NCBI GenBank assembly: GCA_943704425.1
Contig: CALSCP010002817.1
Span: forward strand, 1 to 34,655
Source: Ministeria vibrans ATCC 50519
Lineage: Eukaryota; Protista; Filasterea
Length of the DNA: 34,655 nucleotides
Direction: 5' to 3'
In this document: piece after piece, positions 1-34,477 of the stretch
How the letters are laid out: the number at the start of each line of letters is the position of its first letter
Numbering within the stretch: position 1 is the first letter of the stretch
Position numbers and translations under genes: made by a program
The notes under the pieces: generated by a model
Seen by the model: only the letters and a program-made list of their open reading frames with translations
What the model was told of the DNA's origin: nothing
Database searches by the model: none

Positions 1-27
1 TTTTGCTCGTTTTTAATCTGTGCGTAG

Positions 28-1150
28 TGGAGACTGAAACCTGGAAGACTGTGTACGAAAACCTTTTTGGCATGTACTCCACACATGCTTGCTCCGAGTA
101 TCAGGTACATATTAAACACCACGCGATATTCATGATGACAATCGTCCTAATAATAATTCTAATAACTTTTTGTTGTCATGTATTTTCCCGCAGGTCGCCA
201 TGAAGTCATTTCAGGACGAGTGCAACTTTTCGGCCGAGGCCATCCCGCAACAGGCGGTGATTTCGAGATTTCTCATGAGCCGCACAGGGTTTACTCTGCG
301 CCCAGTCGCTGGTCTCCTGTCCGCTCGCAACTTCCTGAACGGTAAAACAATGTTTACAGAAACAATAATAATAAGAATAATAATTATTTACATACCTTTC
401 TGCTGTTTCTCTACTATTTTTAGGTCTTGCATTCCGCGTATTTCACGCAACCCAGTACATCCGCCACCACTCTAAGCCCCTCTACACACCTGAGCCCGAC
501 GTCTGCCATGAGCTCCTTGGCCACGTGCCTCTCTTTGCCGACCCAACTTTTGCCGATTTCTCCCACGAAATTGGTCTTCTGTCAATCGGTGCGTCGGACT
601 GGGACATTGAACGCCTGGTAAGCAATAGCAGCACAAATAACGGTTCTAAACAATAATACTAATTTTTAATTGAAATTTTTAGTCCACTCTGTACTGGTTC
701 ACCATTGAGTTTGGTCTGACCAAGGAGGCCAACGGCGAAATGCGCGCGTACGGTGCGGGACTTCTCTCTAGCTTTGGTGAGCTGGAGTACTGCCTATCCG
801 ACAAGCCCGAGGTAACAGAGATGCCTTCCAACAAAATCAATCAATTAGTATCACATTAATTAATCCTGGATTCTCAGGTGCTTCCCTTTGACCCTGAGGT
901 CGCGTCGACAACCGAATACCCCATCACGTGCTTCCAACCCACCTACTTCTGCGCTGAGTCATTTGCCGATGCCCTTGCGAAAGTCCGGTAAGCTTATAAT
1001 TAAGCCCCACGTGCATTTCTGTCACACTTTGCTGTGTCATAACAATCATCTCCCTCTCAATTTTGCAGTGCATTTGCCAAGGGCATGAATCGCACCTTCT
1101 CGGTGACGTACGATGCCGAGACTGAGTCTCTCAAGGTTCACAAAGTGTGA
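28..1150 (+). CDS. PAH: Biopterin-dependent aromatic amino acid hydroxylase, most likely phenylalanine-4-hydroxylase; 5'-partial, last 6 exons
   Basis: Exons 28-104, 194-341, 424-617, 683-811, 878-987 and 1069-1150 join through GT-AG introns in a consistent frame. The product contains [54 protein letters not shown] (two Fe-ligand His), [10 protein letters not shown] (Fe-ligand Glu) and [22 protein letters not shown] and YPITCFQP fit PAH better than TH or TPH. Confidence 0.93.
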
Positions 1151-1358
1151 ATATTGGAGTTTGACGCCAAAGGAGAGTCCACGAGAGAGGAGAGAGAGAA
1201 AGCGAGAGTGGGAGAGAAATAACTGAATAAAAACAAACGGTATTTATATATAGGAAAGAACTGGCAGGAAAAATGCGATACGTGGGTTACAAGAATAACA
1301 AAGAGACACAATACTTCCGCCGTAGATTTCTAGATACTTTTGATTGTCTGTATTTGCT

Positions 1359-3464
1359 TTAATTAGTCTCTCTTGCCCAACACCACTTCAGAACAGTTTC
1401 TGCTCGCTTGTCGTGCGGCGTGCACTCTGAAAGCTCTTGCACGGACACACCGAGCGTTTTAAACATGTCCTATTAAAATATACAATGCCGTGCAAAATTA
1501 TTAATACTTATTCTTAACTTTTTTGTGTTATTATGATGATCAGCTTATGAGTATTATGATCTTGAATAATAATAATTATTATTATTATGGCTCACCTGAA
1601 ACACCAAGTCGAGCTGCTTGATCTCGGCAAAGTCGGACTGCCAGCGGACGTTGTCGTCGCGTACAAACTCCTTGACAGGCTCCAGTCTGACCACCAATGT
1701 GTTGGGTGCCTTGAGGATGTCCACGAGCTCACGGAACTCGGGGGCTTCGCGCAGTTCCTCCGCCAGACGCGTGCGCTTCTTCCACAGCGTGTACGCGAGA
1801 AAGTCAATGCCTCGATCCATGATGAACTTGCATCCTTTGACGGAGTGGTTCTCGTGCGCGCGCTTGCATTGCTCGCGCATGATCATGCGCTGCAACGCAT
1901 CAAACGTGTCCTCTGAGTACGTTGCTGACGTCGACATGATATCCTCGCGCGAAATGCCCTCTCTGACCATCACAGAGCGCGCCACCTCATCGACCACTGG
2001 CATGCCGGTGAGACGCGCCAGGTCACGTGCCAGCCACGTCTTTCCGGTCGAGTGCGCCCCGCACAACACAATTGTGTCAATTGTACGTGGGGTCACATGT
2101 ACAGCCACCGACTGCGACGGTTGCTGTGCGACGTTCCACTCAAGCGGCACCGTCTCAAGCGTTGGGGCGCCCGGTGCGAGGGTAAAGTCAACGGCACGCA
2201 GAATGCTGTGCAGGACACAGCGTGCCTCAGTCATTGCAAAGTGCTGACCGACGCACGACCGCTCGCCTTCGCCAAAGGGAAACACCGGCGTGTCCGCGCC
2301 TCTGAGACGAAGCTCCGTAATATTGCTAACTGGATCAAACTCGTGGGCGTTGAGGAATACGCTCGTGTCGTGTCCCAAGCCCTCGAGGTAGAGCACGGCC
2401 TCAGTGAAGTCACTCACAACAACACCGCTGGGAACGCTGCGCATTGCGACGGGACCAACGGGGCGCAGTCTCATCGATTCGTACAGCACGTCGTCAATCA
2501 AAGTCACGTTTGCATCTACGCCGTCTTCAGACGTCAAGCGCCACTTGAAGGGTTGCGCGACGGATGTGCTGCTGAGTTGGCCAACGCTGGCAATGCGCTC
2601 GGCGAGCTCTCGCTTGTTGGTGAGCCCATGGATGGCGTTTGATAATGTAGTGGCAGTCGTGTCAATTGTGGCCAGCGCCATCTCGAGCATCAGATGGACG
2701 CGCTGATGCTTCGTGAGATCTGTGTCGTCGTCCATCACGAGCGCTTGGAAGCTGTCAGCTCCCGACGCACTCACTGCAAGGTGCTTCTCAACCACAGCGT
2801 GAGCGTGCTCACTTGCTTTTGCATAGGCGTGACCCGGCAGGCCCGGAACCCAGCGCAACTTTGCCAGCCAGTTGGGACAGAGAAGGAAATGTTCCCATGC
2901 GCCAAAAAAGCCGCACACTGCGTCAATCAGTTCCTGTCGATCCCGCCTTTCAAGGTTGGCTCCCGGGAAAAAAACATCCAGTGATACGCGCAATGTAACG
3001 TGTTGCATAAAACTGTGGAGATCGACACCATCCGCGTTTGGGCTTAGGGGTGTCTCGCTCAAAATATCGTGGACAGCTTGCTCGCAAAGTTGCGGTAACA
3101 TTTCTCGTGTTTTCTTGTTGACAAACTTATCAAAGTAACGCTTGCGGTCGCGATGCCAAAGATCACGGTCCTGTTGCCAAATAACACCCTCTTTGAACAT
3201 GCCAAGGGCACGGAGCCCCTCGGGCGACCCAAAGCGGCTACTCAAGGTTGTTTTTCGAGTGACGCGCCGAATATGTTCCGCGTCGCGTGTCAACAACATT
3301 TTGCCGGCCAGCGTGAGCGTTTTCGTCTCCGCGAGCATTATTGCGCAGAATCGAGGCACGCGTACCCACCACATGAAAAAGCGCACAAGGCCAAAGCCCA
3401 ACAGAGGCATTTGGTCGAGGTGCAACTTCTGCAACGTCAACTTCACTAGGAATTCGCTGATCAT
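1359..3464 (-). CDS. Cytochrome P450 (aromatase/CYP19-like) fused to a C-terminal NadR/Ttd14-like AAA_28 P-loop kinase domain, about 659 aa
   Basis: Exon 3464-1596, intron 1595-1470 (CAG|GTGAG...TAG), exon 1469-1359 (DMFKTLG...WARETN*). P450 motifs: WxxxR (WHRDR), I-helix [11 protein letters not shown], ExxR (YESMR), heme loop FGEGERSCVG at 2247-2276. Kinase motifs: Walker A GAHSTGKT at 2037-2060, EVAR, MDRG, DDNVR. The start is uncertain because an upstream exon cannot be excluded. Confidence 0.88.
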
Positions 3465-4237
3465 CCAACTCCACTACGAATGAGAGGTGCTTAGGAGTTT
3501 GGATTCATACGCGAGACCACTGTACCCCAGGTAAACGTAAATGAGTAGAATTAAAGTGAGGAAGGAATTGCAGGTACGATTGAGAGACGTCGTCTAAATA
3601 GCGAAGTGGAGTTGAAAAAAATGAAACCGCCCCTGAATAAAATGATAAGAATTTTATTCATCGACCATTCCAATTTGAAATATAGCCACAATTAAAATTT
3701 TCTTGTCTTGTTCATATTTAACAAAAATATATCAAACTTGGGAAGTTGGGATCGGCGTTTGTGTTCAGTTATGTCATTTTTTTTTCTTTTCTTATTTTTT
3801 GACTGGAAATAATGTCGTTCAAAAGTCAACACGAAGTCAACACTCTTCATAAGAACTATAATCCGTCACCGCCTGGCGCCTGGCGCCTGTTGAGCGTTGG
3901 CTGTATTTTTTGACAATTTACAGATGTCATAATACATGACTAATAGTTATAAAGTGTGAAGAGGAGGGAGTACCTTATAGTGATTACATGAGTTCAGAGT
4001 TGGGTCTGACTCACTTCTTAGTTCTTAGTCTCTTGTGAGTCTTGAGTCTTGACCCTTTAGTCACTCACAAGTCATAAGGCTTTATAGTTTATTAAGCCAT
4101 GAAAAGCATTATATTTTTAACAATGATGATAACACATGATAATTGCTGATTCAGTTTCAGTTTGGTTTGGTATTATTTCAATTTTACAATTAATTATTAT
4201 TAATTTTAAAATTCAGTTTTCACACTTTTCTCTCTTC
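3465..4237. promoter_or_regulatory. Divergent (head-to-head) intergenic promoter region between the P450-kinase gene and the giant EGF gene
   Basis: AT-rich ~770 bp between oppositely oriented starts. It contains the direct repeats AAGTCAACAC x2 (~3823-3843) and CGCCTGG x~3 (~3870-3889), plus several TGA(C/G)T(C/A) motifs at 3937-4075. Confidence 0.5.
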
Positions 4238-5065
4238 ATGGCTGGGCGCCCTCTAACAACGCCAACCGCCCTGGCCTGTACCCTGGCTGCACTCCTTCTC
4301 TTCATCACATCCCCAGCGAGTGCTCAAACGCCAGGTACCGCTCACTCACACTCCATTTCAACTCCTACGCACCAATCATGGCTCGTGACGTCCCCATGGC
4401 AACCGTCCAAAAGCACCGCCCATCGGACTTTGCCTTTGTCGTCATACTTTATATCACTCACACAACACCGTGTTGGCGCCTACGGTGGGCTCAGCACACC
4501 CTTCACTCGTCGAATATCATCGAAAAATCGCATCATCATCGATTATTCGTTTCGCACCTCTCTCTCACTCTCCCGCTCTCCCCCCACCCCACACACCCCT
4601 CCTCAGTCTCGCCACTCGTCATCACTCTCACCATGCTCAACACAAAACAACACCCCCTTTTCTTTACCAGTCACTCAATCTCAGACCTATTAGGATTACA
4701 TACATGATTACCTGATGCTATGGAAGCTCCTACTCCTGTTTCAGCTTTAATCCCNNNNNNNNNCTCTCTCTCCCCACCCACCCCTGCACCTCCCCTGCAC
4801 TCCTCACCCTCCACCCTCCACCACCGCCCTCCGCCTCCCACCCCCTCCTTTGGCTCAACGGTCCTTCTTCTTCTGCCCATCCCCTCCTTCCCTCCCAGGC
4901 ATCCTTGCCGACCACTACAGCAACGGCAACCTCACTGCCCCGCTCGTCTTCACCCGTGCCTACGTCTGGGTCAACTTCTTCCTCACCAGCAATGGCTTCC
5001 TTGACCCTCGCTTGCCCAGCAACTACGTAAGACATACAGACAGACAGAGAGAGAGAGAGACAGAC

Positions 5066-31200: not shown

Positions 31201-31291
31201 GTGATAGATGTATAATATTCAACAATTCAGTGCGTGTGAGTAAAAACATAAAGAAACGGATTTATATACAAAAGAAATGAAAAATGGGGGT

Positions 31292-33353
31292 TTAGATTGT
31301 CAGTGAGTTTTGTGGCAATTGATAGATGTGAATGTGTTCGTCCCAGGAACTGTCGACACAGAGACCATTTTGGTGGTTTGAGAGATCAAGACCACAAATA
31401 AACTCTGAGTGGCGCGAAATCAAATCGAGAGCAGAGCCCGTTCGGCTGTCAAAAGTGCGCACTGTCATATCGTAACCTATTGAATATTTTTATATTATCA
31501 TTAGTATATTAATTCAATTTTTCGAGCGAAAACTTCTATTCAATCACTCAAACACATGTATGGTAGCAGTTTAAGCGCGTGAGTTCTTACTGGCTGATGC
31601 AATGAGATGAGGAGAATGTGGAGAGAATTTGACACGACGGACGGCGAAACGATGGCCAAGACACACTGACAGAGGAGAAAATGGAGCGCGAATGTCCCAC
31701 ACTGCAAGAGAAACAAAAGAGAGAAAGAGAGAGGAGAGAGAAACAAAGTGAGAGAGAGAGAAACAAAGTGATAGAGAGAGAAACAAAATGATAGAGAGAG
31801 AAACAAGTGATAGAGAGAGAAACAAAGTGATAGAGAGACACACAAAGTGATAGAGAAAGAGGAGGGAGAAAGGATACAAAGTCGAGTGACAAAGTGATAG
31901 AGAGAGAAACAAAGTGATAGAGAGACACACAAAATGATAGAGAGACACACAAAGTGATAGAGAGAGAGAGGAGGGAGAAAGGAGGGAGAAAGAAGACAAA
32001 GTCGAGTGACAAAGTGATAGAGAGGGAAAGTGATAAAAAGAGTGACAAAGCGAGAGACAAAGTGATAGAAAGAGGTATTGAAGGAGGGTAGACAGTAAAT
32101 AAGAACGGAAATGACTAATAAGTAGAATGCGTGTAAGAATAAGAAACTGACAAAAGGACATTGTCTGAAGGAAAAAGAGTGAAAGAGACACTGAAATGCG
32201 ATCGGGTGTCGCGTGAAAAACTCGAGAACAAGGCATACCTCTGAGAGTGGAATCGGTTGAGCCAGACACACAAATGTTTGGGTCATATTTGGAGAAGTCA
32301 CACGAGAGAATTTCGGAATCGTGAGCGAAAATAGACTGAACGGGACTGGAACCGGAACGGGGATCCCACAAGCGAAGAGTGTGATCGCCACTGGCACTAA
32401 GAATGGTCTAAGAAAATACAAGTGAGTGAGTGATTGTGCAATCCAATGTGAGTCGAAGTTTAAGGTGTTGAGTCGTTACGTCTGGAAGATAGGGAGAGAA
32501 AATGGCGGAATATACGACATTTTCGTGACCTGTAAACTCATGAATAGGATCACTTCTTCGAGGGTCCCACTATGAAAAAGATGTAAATACGGCTATACAA
32601 GAGACACACACACATAGAGAGAGAGAAGGTTCTGCACGTACAAGTTTGATGGATTTGTCCCAAGACGCACTGACAAACGTCTGTTTGTGCACAAGATTCC
32701 AATCCACTCCGTACACCTACAGGATTGAGTAAGCACGCGCACGGCTATCGTAAGACACCAAGCTACCTCTTTGCTGTGGCCTTTGAAAATCAGTAACGGA
32801 GCATTCTACAAAAAATAAATAATAATAATAATATTAATCAATAAAAATTATTCGTGATCAATGGAAAGTGGTGCGCCAATGGATACCGTTGGCTGATTCG
32901 CATCCCACAGCTGTATTGAGCCATCGCCACAGCCAGTGACCACATGGTCCTCGACAAGCTCGCTCCAGGCCACATCGAAGAGCGCGTCGGGCGTCTCAAA
33001 CCTACAGTTCAAGAGAAAGAGAGAGAAAGAGAGAGAGAGAGAGTGAGAGAGAGTTTGGCGAACTTGGATCTGTTCAAAAGTGACCTCCTCTGCTCAATCC
33101 ACTCGCCACCGGGACGCGATTCGCCCATGAGAAGGAGTGCTCCACAGCCGGCAATGCCGTAGTACTGCGCAGCGGCAACAGCAACGCGTCCGGGAGTCCA
33201 CGGAGAGAATTCGGTCGCGTAACTTACGAGAGAGAGAGAGCGAGAGAGAGAGAGACAGAGTTTGTGTGTGTGTCAGCACAAGAAACAAATTATATAGAGA
33301 ACCGGCGAGCGTCACCCGTGAACGCCCGTGGTACGAGCGGCTGTAAACGCCAT
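31292..33353 (-). CDS. PEX7: Peroxisomal targeting signal 2 receptor (WD40 peroxin 7)
   Basis: Exons 33353-33316, 33222-33085, 33001-32887, 32805-32767, 32716-32642, 32569-32480, 32407-32239, 31701-31591 and 31476-31292, all joined by GT-AG introns. The product has [90 protein letters not shown] and SWDE, which are diagnostic for PEX7. Confidence 0.95.
31735..32070 (+). repeat. Intronic minisatellite, ~20-bp unit GAAACAAAGTGATAGAGAGA, with a 120-bp higher-order repeat
   Basis: Tandem degenerate units inside PEX7 intron 31702-32238. The block at 31861 (GGAGGGAGAAAG..ACAAAGTCGAGTGACAAAGTGATAG) recurs at 31981. Confidence 0.85.
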
Positions 33354-33953: not shown

Positions 33954-34477
33954 TCAGGTGACATGGACGAACATTCCATACTTGGGAATGACAGGCACGG
34001 TGTAGTCGTCTGCCTCACCCCCCTTACACTGGTCAATGGGTGTCAGGGTGAAGCGTTGAGTGAGCAGTGAGAGGATCACGCGAGCCTCAAGAAGCGCAAG
34101 ATGTTGACCAAGGCAGTTGCGTGGCCCTATGACACAGAAGGAAAAATTGAGTTGCGCGAGAGAGTAAGTGTGTTGTTGGTACCAATGATGAAAGGGAGAA
34201 ATGCGTTTGGATCGTGTTTCTCTTCGAATCGTTCGGGGTGGAACTCAAGGGGAGCCTCCCACACCTCAGGGTCAAGGTGGACAGAGCTGATACTAAAATA
34301 AGAGAAGGAAGAGAATGAGTGAGTGGGTGAAAGGAATAGCAAGAGATGAGAAAGAGCGAGTGTGTGTTCACCTGCAGAACATTCTTGTTCCGGGCGCAAT
34401 ATAGTTCCCGTCGAGTGTGTCCTCGTTGACTGCCTGACGCACAACCACCGGAACGGGAGTGTGGCGACGCAGAGTCT
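33954..34477 (-). CDS. Cytochrome P450, 3' exons only (5' part not resolved or outside the window)
   Basis: Exons 34477-34372 (ETLRRHTPVPVVVRQAVNEDTLDG...), 34292-34183 (HLDPEVWEAPLEFHPERF...FLPFIIG) and 34126-33954 (PRNCLGQHLALLEARV...HVT*). ExxR, PERF and FxxGxRxCxG are all present. Confidence 0.92.

Follow-up and report, generated by a model that had tools for sequence, protein, structure and literature searches.

The gene described here very probably encodes a two-domain enzyme, a clan-19 cytochrome P450 joined to an AAA_28 kinase-like domain, from an old and pan-eukaryotic family within which the aromatases of chordates (CYP19) are nested. It lies in a 34.6-kb stretch of DNA that we refer to as the window, meaning the whole 34,655 nucleotides analyzed. 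An earlier note on this DNA had read positions 2085-3464 as an aromatase-like P450 in an apparently non-chordate eukaryote. A complete P450 domain is found there, but the protein has two domains, of which that span takes in the first alone.

Gene structure and expression

The window gene is real, intact and expressed, and it gives rise to one spliced, polyadenylated mRNA (Table 1). Two RNA-type contigs (2099 and 2088 nt) run from 3516 or 3536 to 1595, resume at 1468 and continue to 1327 or 1323, with a poly(A) tail. A separate DNA contig spans 1594-4654, and the window sequence recurs in 8 studies, seawater and algal-culture metagenomes among them. Read without splicing, the minus strand holds an uninterrupted open frame (1554-3464); the spliced product is 659 amino acids long and has two domains, the "TPR" that ends the P450 running straight into the AAA_28 domain with zero linker. 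The joined two-exon protein was used locally to fix coordinates and for comparison with the proteins of relatives, while database searches and fold prediction were run with exon 1 or the unspliced frame rather than the joined protein.

Table 1. Features of the window gene, in window coordinates.
Feature	Positions	Strand	Details
5' UTR	3465..3536	(-)	RNA contigs stop at 3516 and 3536
P450 domain, residues 1-460	2085..3464	(-)	ATG start at 3464
P450 landmarks			ExxR E329/R332; I-helix D268-T269; heme-ligand Cys404, codon 2253-2255, inside FPFGEGERSCVG
AAA_28 P-loop kinase-like domain, exon 1 portion, residues 461-623	1595..2084	(-)	
AAA_28 motifs			Walker A G469-T476; E493..R496; D550-R551..D554; lid D603-D604-N-V-R607
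Sole intron	1469..1594	(-)	126 nt, GT..AG, AT-rich; RNA contigs jump from 1595 to 1468
Exon 2	1359..1468	(-)	Final 36 AAA_28 codons and stop codon 1359-1361
3' UTR and poly(A) site	1327..1358	(-)	22 untemplated T (plus strand) before 1327 in one contig

The P450 domain

Residues 1-460 match the P450 family in Pfam (PF00067; 112.6 bits; cut-off, 22.8), and when an AF2 model of exon 1 (pLDDT, 86.5; pTM, 0.85) was submitted to Foldseek, P450s made up all of the top matches listed. The heme-thiolate loop (F397-G398-E-G400-E-R402-S-C404-V-G406) follows the F..G.R.C.G pattern, and both the K-helix ExxR pair and the I-helix acid-alcohol pair are present. There is no PERF arginine (the sequence reads FDPVSN), a point that the earlier note had raised in likening the protein to aromatase. 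However, most relatives keep RF at this position, and thus the loss is independent of that in aromatase rather than jointly inherited.

The window protein is the most divergent member of its family and sits on a long branch; among 1.84 billion representative proteins, none other exceeds 31% identity to it. An exact-sequence look-up of the protein gave no match, and a word-indexed protein search, which is insensitive at such divergence, returned two generic P450s only for the P450 part and none for the kinase part. No clear N-terminal membrane anchor was found in the window protein (best 19-residue hydropathy, 1.28).

A relative of aromatase

By sequence, profile and fold, no named P450 comes as close to the window P450 as CYP19, which clearly outscores members of clans 2, 3, 4, 46 and 51 and mitochondrial, plant and bacterial P450s. 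A single-sequence search of the PDB gave CYP19A1 first (E, 1.6e-18; 69.7 bits) and CYP21 as runner-up (E, 5e-9; 38.3 bits). A profile built from 16 non-chordate relatives of the window protein scored human aromatase at 365 bits and the second-best P450 structure, whatever its clan, at 156 bits. The predicted fold is likewise nearest to 3EQM (TM, 0.79; next match, 0.69). Profile, tree (see below) and fold thus place the window P450 in the same clan as the aromatases (human, piranha, amphioxus and hagfish). Identity is low, at 23% over 427 residues to piranha aromatase and 23-24% to the piranha and amphioxus rows of the family alignment.

The likeness can be followed residue by residue. In alignment with human CYP19A1 (3EQM/4KQ8), SSRFGS...GL..GM...G.I of the window protein corresponds to aromatase 113-134, G.F.AW to 219-224, LEM.A..DT to 301-310 and YESMR..PV...MR to 361-375; held in common are a B'-C motif, RFG..GL..GM...GII.NN...W, and an F-helix motif, YF.AW. 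All of the segments quoted in the earlier note are present, and most of its pairings with aromatase are borne out. The aromatase pocket residues R115 (R77 in the window protein), I133 (I95), F221 (F187), W224 (W190), E302 (E261), A306 (A265), D309 (D268) and T310 (T269) are kept, as is M374 (M341), in agreement with what had been claimed for R115, F221, W224, E302, D309/T310 and M374. The terminal "TPR" pairs with "IPR" in piranha aromatase and marks the domain junction in fused relatives.

Four positions differ. The P308 of aromatase is Ile267 in the window protein, as had been noted, F134 is W96, V370 is G337 and S478 is A446. At all four positions, every non-chordate row of the alignment differs from the two chordate rows, the family having W for F134, I or T for P308, G for V370 and A for S478. 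The chordate sequences examined also do without the C-terminal kinase-like domain, whereas the window protein has one and has no clear membrane anchor. CYP families are by rule drawn at about 40% or more amino acid identity to named members (PMC4229089). The window protein, at 23%, falls below the CYP19 family level and has W96, I267, G337 and A446 in place of the residues of chordate aromatase. Judged by its identity and by these residues, the window protein is best described as an aromatase relative and not an aromatase; lacking the pocket residues that only chordate aromatases have, it bears out the earlier remark that its substrate need not be an androgen.

Phylogeny and distribution

A careful maximum-likelihood (ML) tree (LG+C20 PMSF) unites the window protein, its family and chordate CYP19 in one clade (99/95), with the split from the outgroup at 100/99. 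Two quick trees likewise bring the window protein, its relatives and the chordate aromatases together (SH-aLRT, 91 to 99). Within the careful tree, the crinoid sequence is sister to chordate CYP19 (100/97), and chordates, crinoid and rotifer form one group (99/95). As outgroups, the trees had the 34-65 non-family P450s closest to the query rather than curated representatives of every named clan. The branch of the window protein is very long (1.73 changes per column) and pairs with a second long branch near the root of the family; its exact position within the family is therefore unreliable. In total, the 365- versus 156-bit profile scores, the ML clade and the fold nearest to 3EQM support placing the window P450 in clan 19, as a specific CYP19 relative outside chordates, which is what the earlier note had inferred.

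Members of the family were found in Stenamoeba, Rhizamoeba, Rhizophlyctis, Astrephomene, Mesostigma, Rhynchopus, Digyalum, Rotaria, Anneissia and chordates, a range that takes in amoebae, a chytrid, green algae, a diplonemid, a rotifer and a crinoid and at least five eukaryotic supergroups. When the tree is rooted on outgroup P450s, chordate CYP19 nests inside this pan-eukaryotic family. Given that nesting and the span of at least five supergroups, CYP19 is the derived form, and the choice that had been left between an ancestral and a horizontally moved relative is narrowed accordingly.

The classical view repeated in the earlier note, that CYP19 is restricted to chordates, is outdated: the crinoid protein is labeled "aromatase-like" in databases and the chytrid protein "aromatase," and a 2024 paper placed amphioxus Cyp19-like1 with hydroids and sea lilies (PMC11047327). 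The names of the crinoid, chytrid and Rotaria "aromatase(-like)" proteins are products of automatic annotation. The proteins themselves (Anneissia japonica XP_033105836, Rhizophlyctis rosea KAJ3053522 and the Rotaria CAF proteins) belong to the family of the window protein, to which they are 25-27% identical, and they have the same set of residues (W134, T/I308, G370 and A478, which we call ancestral) and a linked AAA_28 of the same subfamily. In the crinoid and the rotifer, the kinase is a separate neighboring gene or is fused to an RNA-dependent RNA polymerase (RdRP), whereas that of the window is fused to the P450.

What is the host? The genome assembly to which the window belongs amounts to 29.7 Mb in 2860 contigs, and an assembly gap interrupts its HSP90 gene. 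Of its several diflavin reductase genes, the single locus inspected resembles NDOR1, not CPR; the identity of this NDOR1 to its counterparts in animals and protists is no more than 41-46%, with 44-46% for those of animals, a choanoflagellate and an ichthyosporean, which may be taken as a weak holozoan signal. No light-harvesting-complex gene was found in a search of the genome, which makes an alga unlikely; the host is described as a marine, non-photosynthetic, single-celled eukaryote. Based on the 29.7-Mb genome and an NDOR1 without a close chordate relative, the host is not a chordate, as had been supposed.

The fused kinase-like domain

The second domain matches AAA_28 (PF13521) at 59.4 bits against a cut-off of 27. 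Its Walker A (GAHSTGKT), DR..D and DDNVR motifs are conserved across 18 fused relatives, the family pattern being GxxSxGKT, E.AR, DR..D and DDGxR. A sequence search of solved structures gave no significant match for the kinase domain, including to solved kinases of the NMP-kinase fold, and the ESM Atlas held generic AAA_28 clusters only. The predicted fold, in contrast, is nearest to NadR ribosylnicotinamide kinase, shikimate kinase and deoxynucleoside kinase. NadR-type, shikimate, gluconate and deoxynucleoside kinases have the AAA_28 Pfam assignment, Walker A, DR..D and the DDGxR lid-like motif in common with the window domain, although the latter is set apart by its fusion to a P450. The partner of the P450 thus has, in the predicted model, a small-molecule-kinase fold, and we infer that it would transfer phosphate to the hydroxyl of a small molecule.

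The pairing is a property of the family. Fusion of P450 to AAA_28 occurs in at least 20 family representatives, and in 10 of the 11 loci examined the P450 is linked, by fusion or adjacency, to the family-specific AAA_28; in members that appear "unfused," a domain of this AAA_28 subfamily is encoded by the adjacent gene or was cut away by the gene caller. Both orders of the two domains occur (P0046 and L053). Two further AAA_28 loci of the window genome did not match the family-specific model. A count of 10 fusion-state changes, drawn from predicted protein lengths, reflects gene-calling artifacts in part and is unfit as a count of losses. Coupling of the P450 to a specific kinase-like domain was probably the ancestral state of the clan.

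P450 BM3 (CYP102) is a natural fusion of a P450 with its reductase. In oomycetes, CYP5619 is a P450 fused with a peroxidase/dioxygenase (PMC5919972). Like these, the window protein unites a P450 and another, putatively catalytic domain in one polypeptide, but unlike these, its partner is a P-loop kinase-like domain, neither redox partner nor oxidase. We found no paper in the literature describing a fusion of a P450 to an AAA_28 kinase-like domain.

The RdRP-helicase neighborhood

In 6 of the 11 loci examined, the window not being one of the six, a gene for an RdRP (PF05183), usually with an SF1 helicase, directly adjoins the P450/AAA_28 pair or is fused to AAA_28. The RdRP is of the eukaryotic cellular type, which includes the divergent bdelloid clades. 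The adjacent RdRPs are 35-39% identical to one another, and the genes of these modules are 86-370 bp apart. In Rotaria and at one further locus (L050), the AAA_28 subfamily of the family is fused to RdRP and not to P450. The amphioxus locus, the sole chordate locus examined, has neither an AAA_28 nor an RdRP neighbor. For the window, tblastn found no RdRP in the 34.6 kb, and a search of its genome with PF05183 or a related RdRP protein, run without a positive control, gave no match. Based on this lack of a detected RdRP, the P450-kinase pair may work alone in the window organism, which would fit its fast-evolving sequence.

The recurrent adjacency suggests an ancestral tie of the P450/kinase pair to an RNA-directed process. 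It could be, with somewhat less than an even chance, that the clan-19 P450, AAA_28 and RdRP-SF1 helicase were one ancient coupled module, that aromatase is its P450 with both partners lost and four pocket positions remodeled, and that the window gene is a survivor for which no RdRP was detected. One possibility is that such a module served as the small-molecule arm, perhaps sterol or nucleoside derived, of an RNA-silencing or antiviral system.

Proposed mechanism and alternatives

For the window enzyme, we tentatively propose a mechanism of oxidation followed by phosphorylation, to which we give rather less than an even chance. In this model, the P450 would draw electrons from a microsomal-type diflavin reductase and would hydroxylate a hydrophobic substrate of about steroid or sterol size. 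The substrate would be held in the family-wide, aromatase-like pocket (R77, I95, F187, W190, E261, A265, D268 and T269), which would depart from that of aromatase at the defining positions (W96, I267, G337 and A446). The fused kinase-like domain would phosphorylate a hydroxyl on the same molecule.

Could the kinase-like domain instead belong to the RdRP-helicase, with the P450 as a co-regulated passenger? AAA_28 would then be a nucleotide-dependent regulator or component of that machinery, acting, e.g., on RNA ends or nucleosides, and it is true that its subfamily is fused to RdRP instead of P450 in Rotaria and L050 and that nucleoside kinases, NadR and dNK, are among the solved structures closest to it. 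We nonetheless regard this as unlikely. The fusion to P450 is linker free in most lineages, both domain orders occur, and the pairing persists without RdRP in the DNA examined at the window and at L054 (the DNA of L052 ends at the end of the gene) and in a genome where RdRP was not detected; these observations argue for a direct partnership of the P450 and the kinase-like domain. A different reading concerns descent rather than function. In it, P450 and kinase travel horizontally as a mobile module, which may or may not include the RdRP-helicase gene, and the window gene, perhaps along with those of animals, was acquired from another eukaryote or through large DNA viruses instead of being inherited vertically from an early eukaryote. 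The patchy distribution of the module, its compact and tightly spaced genes and the lack of a close relative of the window protein would suit such a history, as would a family tree that departs from the species tree (an unknown fused protein clusters with that of the diplonemid, and a metagenome protein with that of Mesostigma), and ancient transfer has been considered possible for the divergent bdelloid RdRP clades (PMC7943196). On balance we doubt it, given that the grouping of chordates, crinoid and rotifer at 99/95 fits descent within animals, that the window gene has a host-style AT-rich intron and a G+C content like that of its neighbors, and that no viral genes were seen across the loci examined.

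Two further readings fare worse. It is very unlikely that the window protein is a true steroid aromatase, that is, a protist estrogen synthase, even though aromatase is its best match by sequence and fold and R115, F221, W224, D309, T310 and M374 are kept; these residues are invariant across the non-chordate family and hence ancestral rather than marks of aromatase, identity to the fish enzyme is low, and I, A, G and W stand in place of the chordate-only P308, S478, V370 and F134. It is extremely unlikely that the CYP19 likeness is an artifact of long-branch attraction or chance, or that the contig is chordate or contaminant DNA. The long branch and the fragmented assembly might invite that suspicion, but the profile search does not depend on a tree and leaves a gap of 200 bits or more, and the motifs behind the match come from the variable B'-C and F-helix regions rather than from the generic P450 core. 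Likewise, the RNA-type contigs are spliced and polyadenylated and the same runs also cover the neighboring gene, the same stretch is met in all 8 studies noted above, and a gene on another contig of the genome is without a close chordate relative. The two-domain clan-19 P450-AAA_28 enzyme of an old family is thus the best explanation overall.

Implications

The adjacency to RdRP-helicase genes and the exchange of domains with them would, if functional, tie a P450 to RNA-directed processes, for which we know of no precedent. More broadly, the family of the window protein bears on the origin of aromatase and hence of estrogen synthesis: clan 19 is old and pan-eukaryotic, and chordate aromatase looks like a pared-down offshoot of an older system. 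Given that four pocket positions part the two aligned chordate aromatases from every non-chordate row, both the ancestral substrate and the changes that created aromatase activity become directly testable.

Gene structure and host

A single open frame on the minus strand runs from 3464 down to 1554. Pfam models recognize two domains in it, a P450 at residues 56 to 439 (112.6 bits, cut-off 22.8) and, at residues 465 to 630, an AAA_28 P-loop domain (59.4 bits, cut-off 27). The final codons of this frame run into the sequence of an AT-rich GT..AG intron. Two RNA-type contigs from public runs (2099 and 2088 nt) extend from 3516/3536 to 1595 and then straight on from 1468 to 1327/1323, one of them ending in an untemplated poly(A) tail at 1327. 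Because both span the spliced exons, the gene structure is fixed; with no upstream exon, the short N terminus of the protein is real. An independent DNA contig spanning 1594-4654 differs from the window at two positions, both in the kinase-like domain. The query in all database searches and fold predictions was exon 1 or the unspliced frame.

Features of the P450-AAA_28 gene, the rest of the window and one further contig
Feature	Position	Strand	Remarks
5' end of P450-AAA_28 gene	near 3516-3536	-	RNA-type contigs
Start ATG	3464	-	
Sole intron, 126 nt	1469-1594	-	RNA-type contigs
Stop codon	1359-1361	-	product 659 aa
Single-base difference versus other runs	1944		C>G (E507D)
Single-base difference versus other runs	1962		T>C (silent, R501)
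Biopterin-type aromatic amino-acid hydroxylase gene, 3' part	1-1257	+	phenylalanine-hydroxylase-like by eye from translation; 81-nt intron 987-1067; poly(A) site 1257
Giant EGF-repeat surface protein gene	4136-31088	+	signal-peptide exon from near 4240; 10-N assembly gap near 4754-4763
WD40-repeat exons	31290-33012	-	PEX7-type peroxisomal receptor-like by eye only; low-G+C stretch rich in TC/CT simple sequence
Exons of a second, unrelated multi-exon P450 (right end)	34032-34444	-	PERF and haem-loop region
Cytosolic HSP90 gene (L047), contig C1392 of the window's genome (G000)	1935-4505	-	broken by a long N run, an assembly gap

The hydroxylase gene converges on the P450 gene, with poly(A) sites 70 nt apart, and its contig depth in RNA-type runs is about 10 times that of the P450 gene. 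The EGF-repeat and P450 genes are divergent, separated by about 780 bp of AT-rich sequence. The genome as a whole holds about 15 P450 loci.

The assembly comprises 29.7 Mb in 2860 contigs. In it, several diflavin reductase genes were found and light-harvesting-complex genes were not. The nearest matches to its NDOR1 come from animals, the choanoflagellate Savillea and the ichthyosporean Amoebidium, with identities of only 44-46%, and a set of 5.8 billion proteins contains no closer relative. The size of the genome and the divergence of NDOR1 show that this is not chordate DNA, in keeping with the non-chordate, unicellular host proposed in the earlier note. The window stretch is present in runs of eight studies, seawater and algal-culture metagenomes included, and the host is a marine heterotrophic protist, probably a holozoan.

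A family around the aromatases

All the protein segments that the earlier note quoted are present, and HMMER alignment confirmed four of its five pairings with human aromatase; the fifth, a TPR at the domain end, is matched only in piranha aromatase. Among solved structures, the best match is aromatase (E 1.6e-18, 69.7 bits), followed by CYP21 (E 5e-9, 38.3 bits). The predicted structure of exon 1 (pLDDT 86.5, pTM 0.85) likewise ranks human aromatase (3EQM) first, with a TM score of 0.79 against 0.69 for the second match. The resemblance is thus specific and goes beyond generic P450 similarity. The missing PERF arginine, correctly observed, is not a likeness to aromatase by descent: most relatives keep RF, so that the two arrived at this state independently.

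When 1.84 billion representatives were searched exhaustively with HMMER, no close relative turned up (best match 31% identical, E 1e-39). The search did return about 45 cluster representatives with the same diagnostic motifs as the window protein: RFG..GL..LGM...GIIWNND...W, LEMLLAGTDTSSVT, ESMR.KPVGPV..R.A and PFG.GPKGCVGQ. Based on source names, their hosts include Amoebozoa (Stenamoeba, Rhizamoeba), a chytrid fungus (Rhizophlyctis), green algae (Astrephomene, Mesostigma), a diplonemid (Rhynchopus), an alveolate (Digyalum), a bdelloid rotifer (Rotaria) and a crinoid (Anneissia); the true aromatases of piranha, amphioxus and hagfish appear from about rank 26 onwards. With a profile built from 16 non-chordate members, human aromatase scored 365 bits (E 4e-108) and the top P450 structure from outside its clan 156 bits, in a search whose other-clan structures included CYP11A1, CYP97, CYP17, CYP3A, CYP46, CYP2, CYP4, CYP24, CYP90 and BM3.

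A careful ML tree, built on 75 rows under LG+C20 PMSF, separates the 34 nearest non-family P450s, used as the outgroup, from the rest at 100/99 and unites the window protein and its family with the chordate aromatases in one clade at 99/95. Within it, the chordate aromatases (100/99) have the crinoid sequence as sister (100/97), and the next to join them, at 99/95, are the rotifer sequence and a fused metagenomic protein. Two quick trees agree. The window protein falls near the base of the clade, and its branch measures 1.73 changes per column; because this long branch is paired with another, its exact position is untrustworthy, in contrast to its membership of the clade. Profile scores, trees and host together bear out a clan-19 relative outside chordates.

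Does membership of the clade make the protein an aromatase? It does not. We mapped the aromatase pocket, in native numbering taken from alignment to the 3EQM chain, onto 30 sequences, including two chordate rows. R115, F221, W224, E302, D309 and T310, which the earlier note had as kept, are indeed kept and are invariant or nearly so in all rows, as are I133 and A306. Four positions split the alignment, namely F134 (W in the others), P308 (T/I/V/A), V370 (G) and S478 (A), and the two chordate rows alone match aromatase at every one of them. In the window protein the residues are W96, I267, G337 and A446, the isoleucine at P308 being as first read; this is the ancestral set. Identity is 23% with fish aromatase and 26% with the crinoid protein; as CYP nomenclature requires 40%, the window protein lies outside CYP19, as a new family within the aromatase clan.

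The existence of non-chordate aromatase look-alikes is not new, and the view of CYP19 as chordate-restricted is already outdated in the databases: they label the crinoid protein "aromatase-like" and the chytrid protein "aromatase," and amphioxus Cyp19-like1 has been grouped with "hydroids and sea lilies" (2024; PMC11047327). Apart from that paper, we found no literature on the family's spread across eukaryotes, on CYP19 as a lineage nested within it, on its dedicated kinase-like partner or on the RdRP linkage, and none on a P450-AAA_28 fusion.

The kinase-like partner and its RdRP neighbour

The AAA_28 domain starts directly after the conserved "..PR" that closes the P450 domain and is carried by at least 20 family representatives, in one of which the order is reversed. 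Its motifs (Walker A GxxSxGKT, E.AR, DR..D and DDGxR) are kept across the fused proteins, with Walker A at G469-T476 and DDGxR at D603-R607 in the window protein. A separate model (pLDDT 86.8) has as its nearest folds NadR ribosylnicotinamide kinase, shikimate kinase, deoxynucleoside kinase and gluconate kinase, all small-molecule phosphotransferases. Beside several "unfused" relatives, the neighbouring gene is an AAA_28 of the same subfamily: at L048/L049 and L054 it lies 50-66 nt downstream of the P450, the gap probably being an intron at which the gene caller split one gene, and at L053 and in the crinoid it is a separate upstream gene. A family-specific HMM matches all of these neighbours (E 1e-22 to 1e-39), and the window's own genome has two further AAA_28 loci that it fails to match. 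The partner is thus present at 10 of 11 loci examined, the sole exception being the amphioxus aromatase locus, where neither AAA_28 nor RdRP was found within 10 kb. The upstream neighbour there is a large NACHT-WD40 (NWD1-like) gene. The pairing is ancestral and persistent.

At six of the 11 loci (L035, L048, L050/L051, L053, L055/L056 and L058, from a rotifer, a chytrid and several protists), a PF05183 eukaryotic-type RdRP gene adjoins the pair, in most cases with an SF1 helicase (AAA_11/AAA_12) fused to it or beside it. The RdRP gene is divergent and 86 bp away at L035; at L048, RdRP and helicase lie directly upstream; at L050/L051, an AAA_28-RdRP fusion diverges from an unfused P450; and at L053, an RdRP-helicase gene diverges from the AAA_28 and P450 genes. 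In Rotaria, an AAA_28-RdRP-helicase gene lies 2.6 kb downstream of the P450, and in Rhizophlyctis, an RdRP-helicase gene diverges from the fused P450-AAA_28 gene. AAA_28 is fused to RdRP rather than to P450 in two cases, and the module-adjacent RdRPs are mutually 35-39% identical. Could this adjacency be a matter of chance? That is unlikely, because RdRP genes are rare (an average of 0.6 per genome in a reference set of eukaryotes; PMC7943196), the hosts are so distant and AAA_28 moves between P450 and RdRP. The linkage could quite possibly, if still short of probably, reflect shared function. RdRP was not found within the 34.6-kb window or, with the Pfam model and a related RdRP protein as queries, in its genome; the latter search had no positive control, and absence is not claimed. 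The organism may lack RNA interference.

We hold the identity and evolutionary placement of the gene to be highly probable: it is expressed and belongs, as a divergent member, to an undescribed P450-kinase family within the aromatase clan. Based mainly on the ancestral, persistent pairing, we propose that both domains act on one substrate. We speculate that the P450 domain would add a hydroxyl, which the kinase-like domain would then phosphorylate; such oxidation and phosphorylation of a sterol-sized substrate is a tentative, rather doubtful mechanism for the family.
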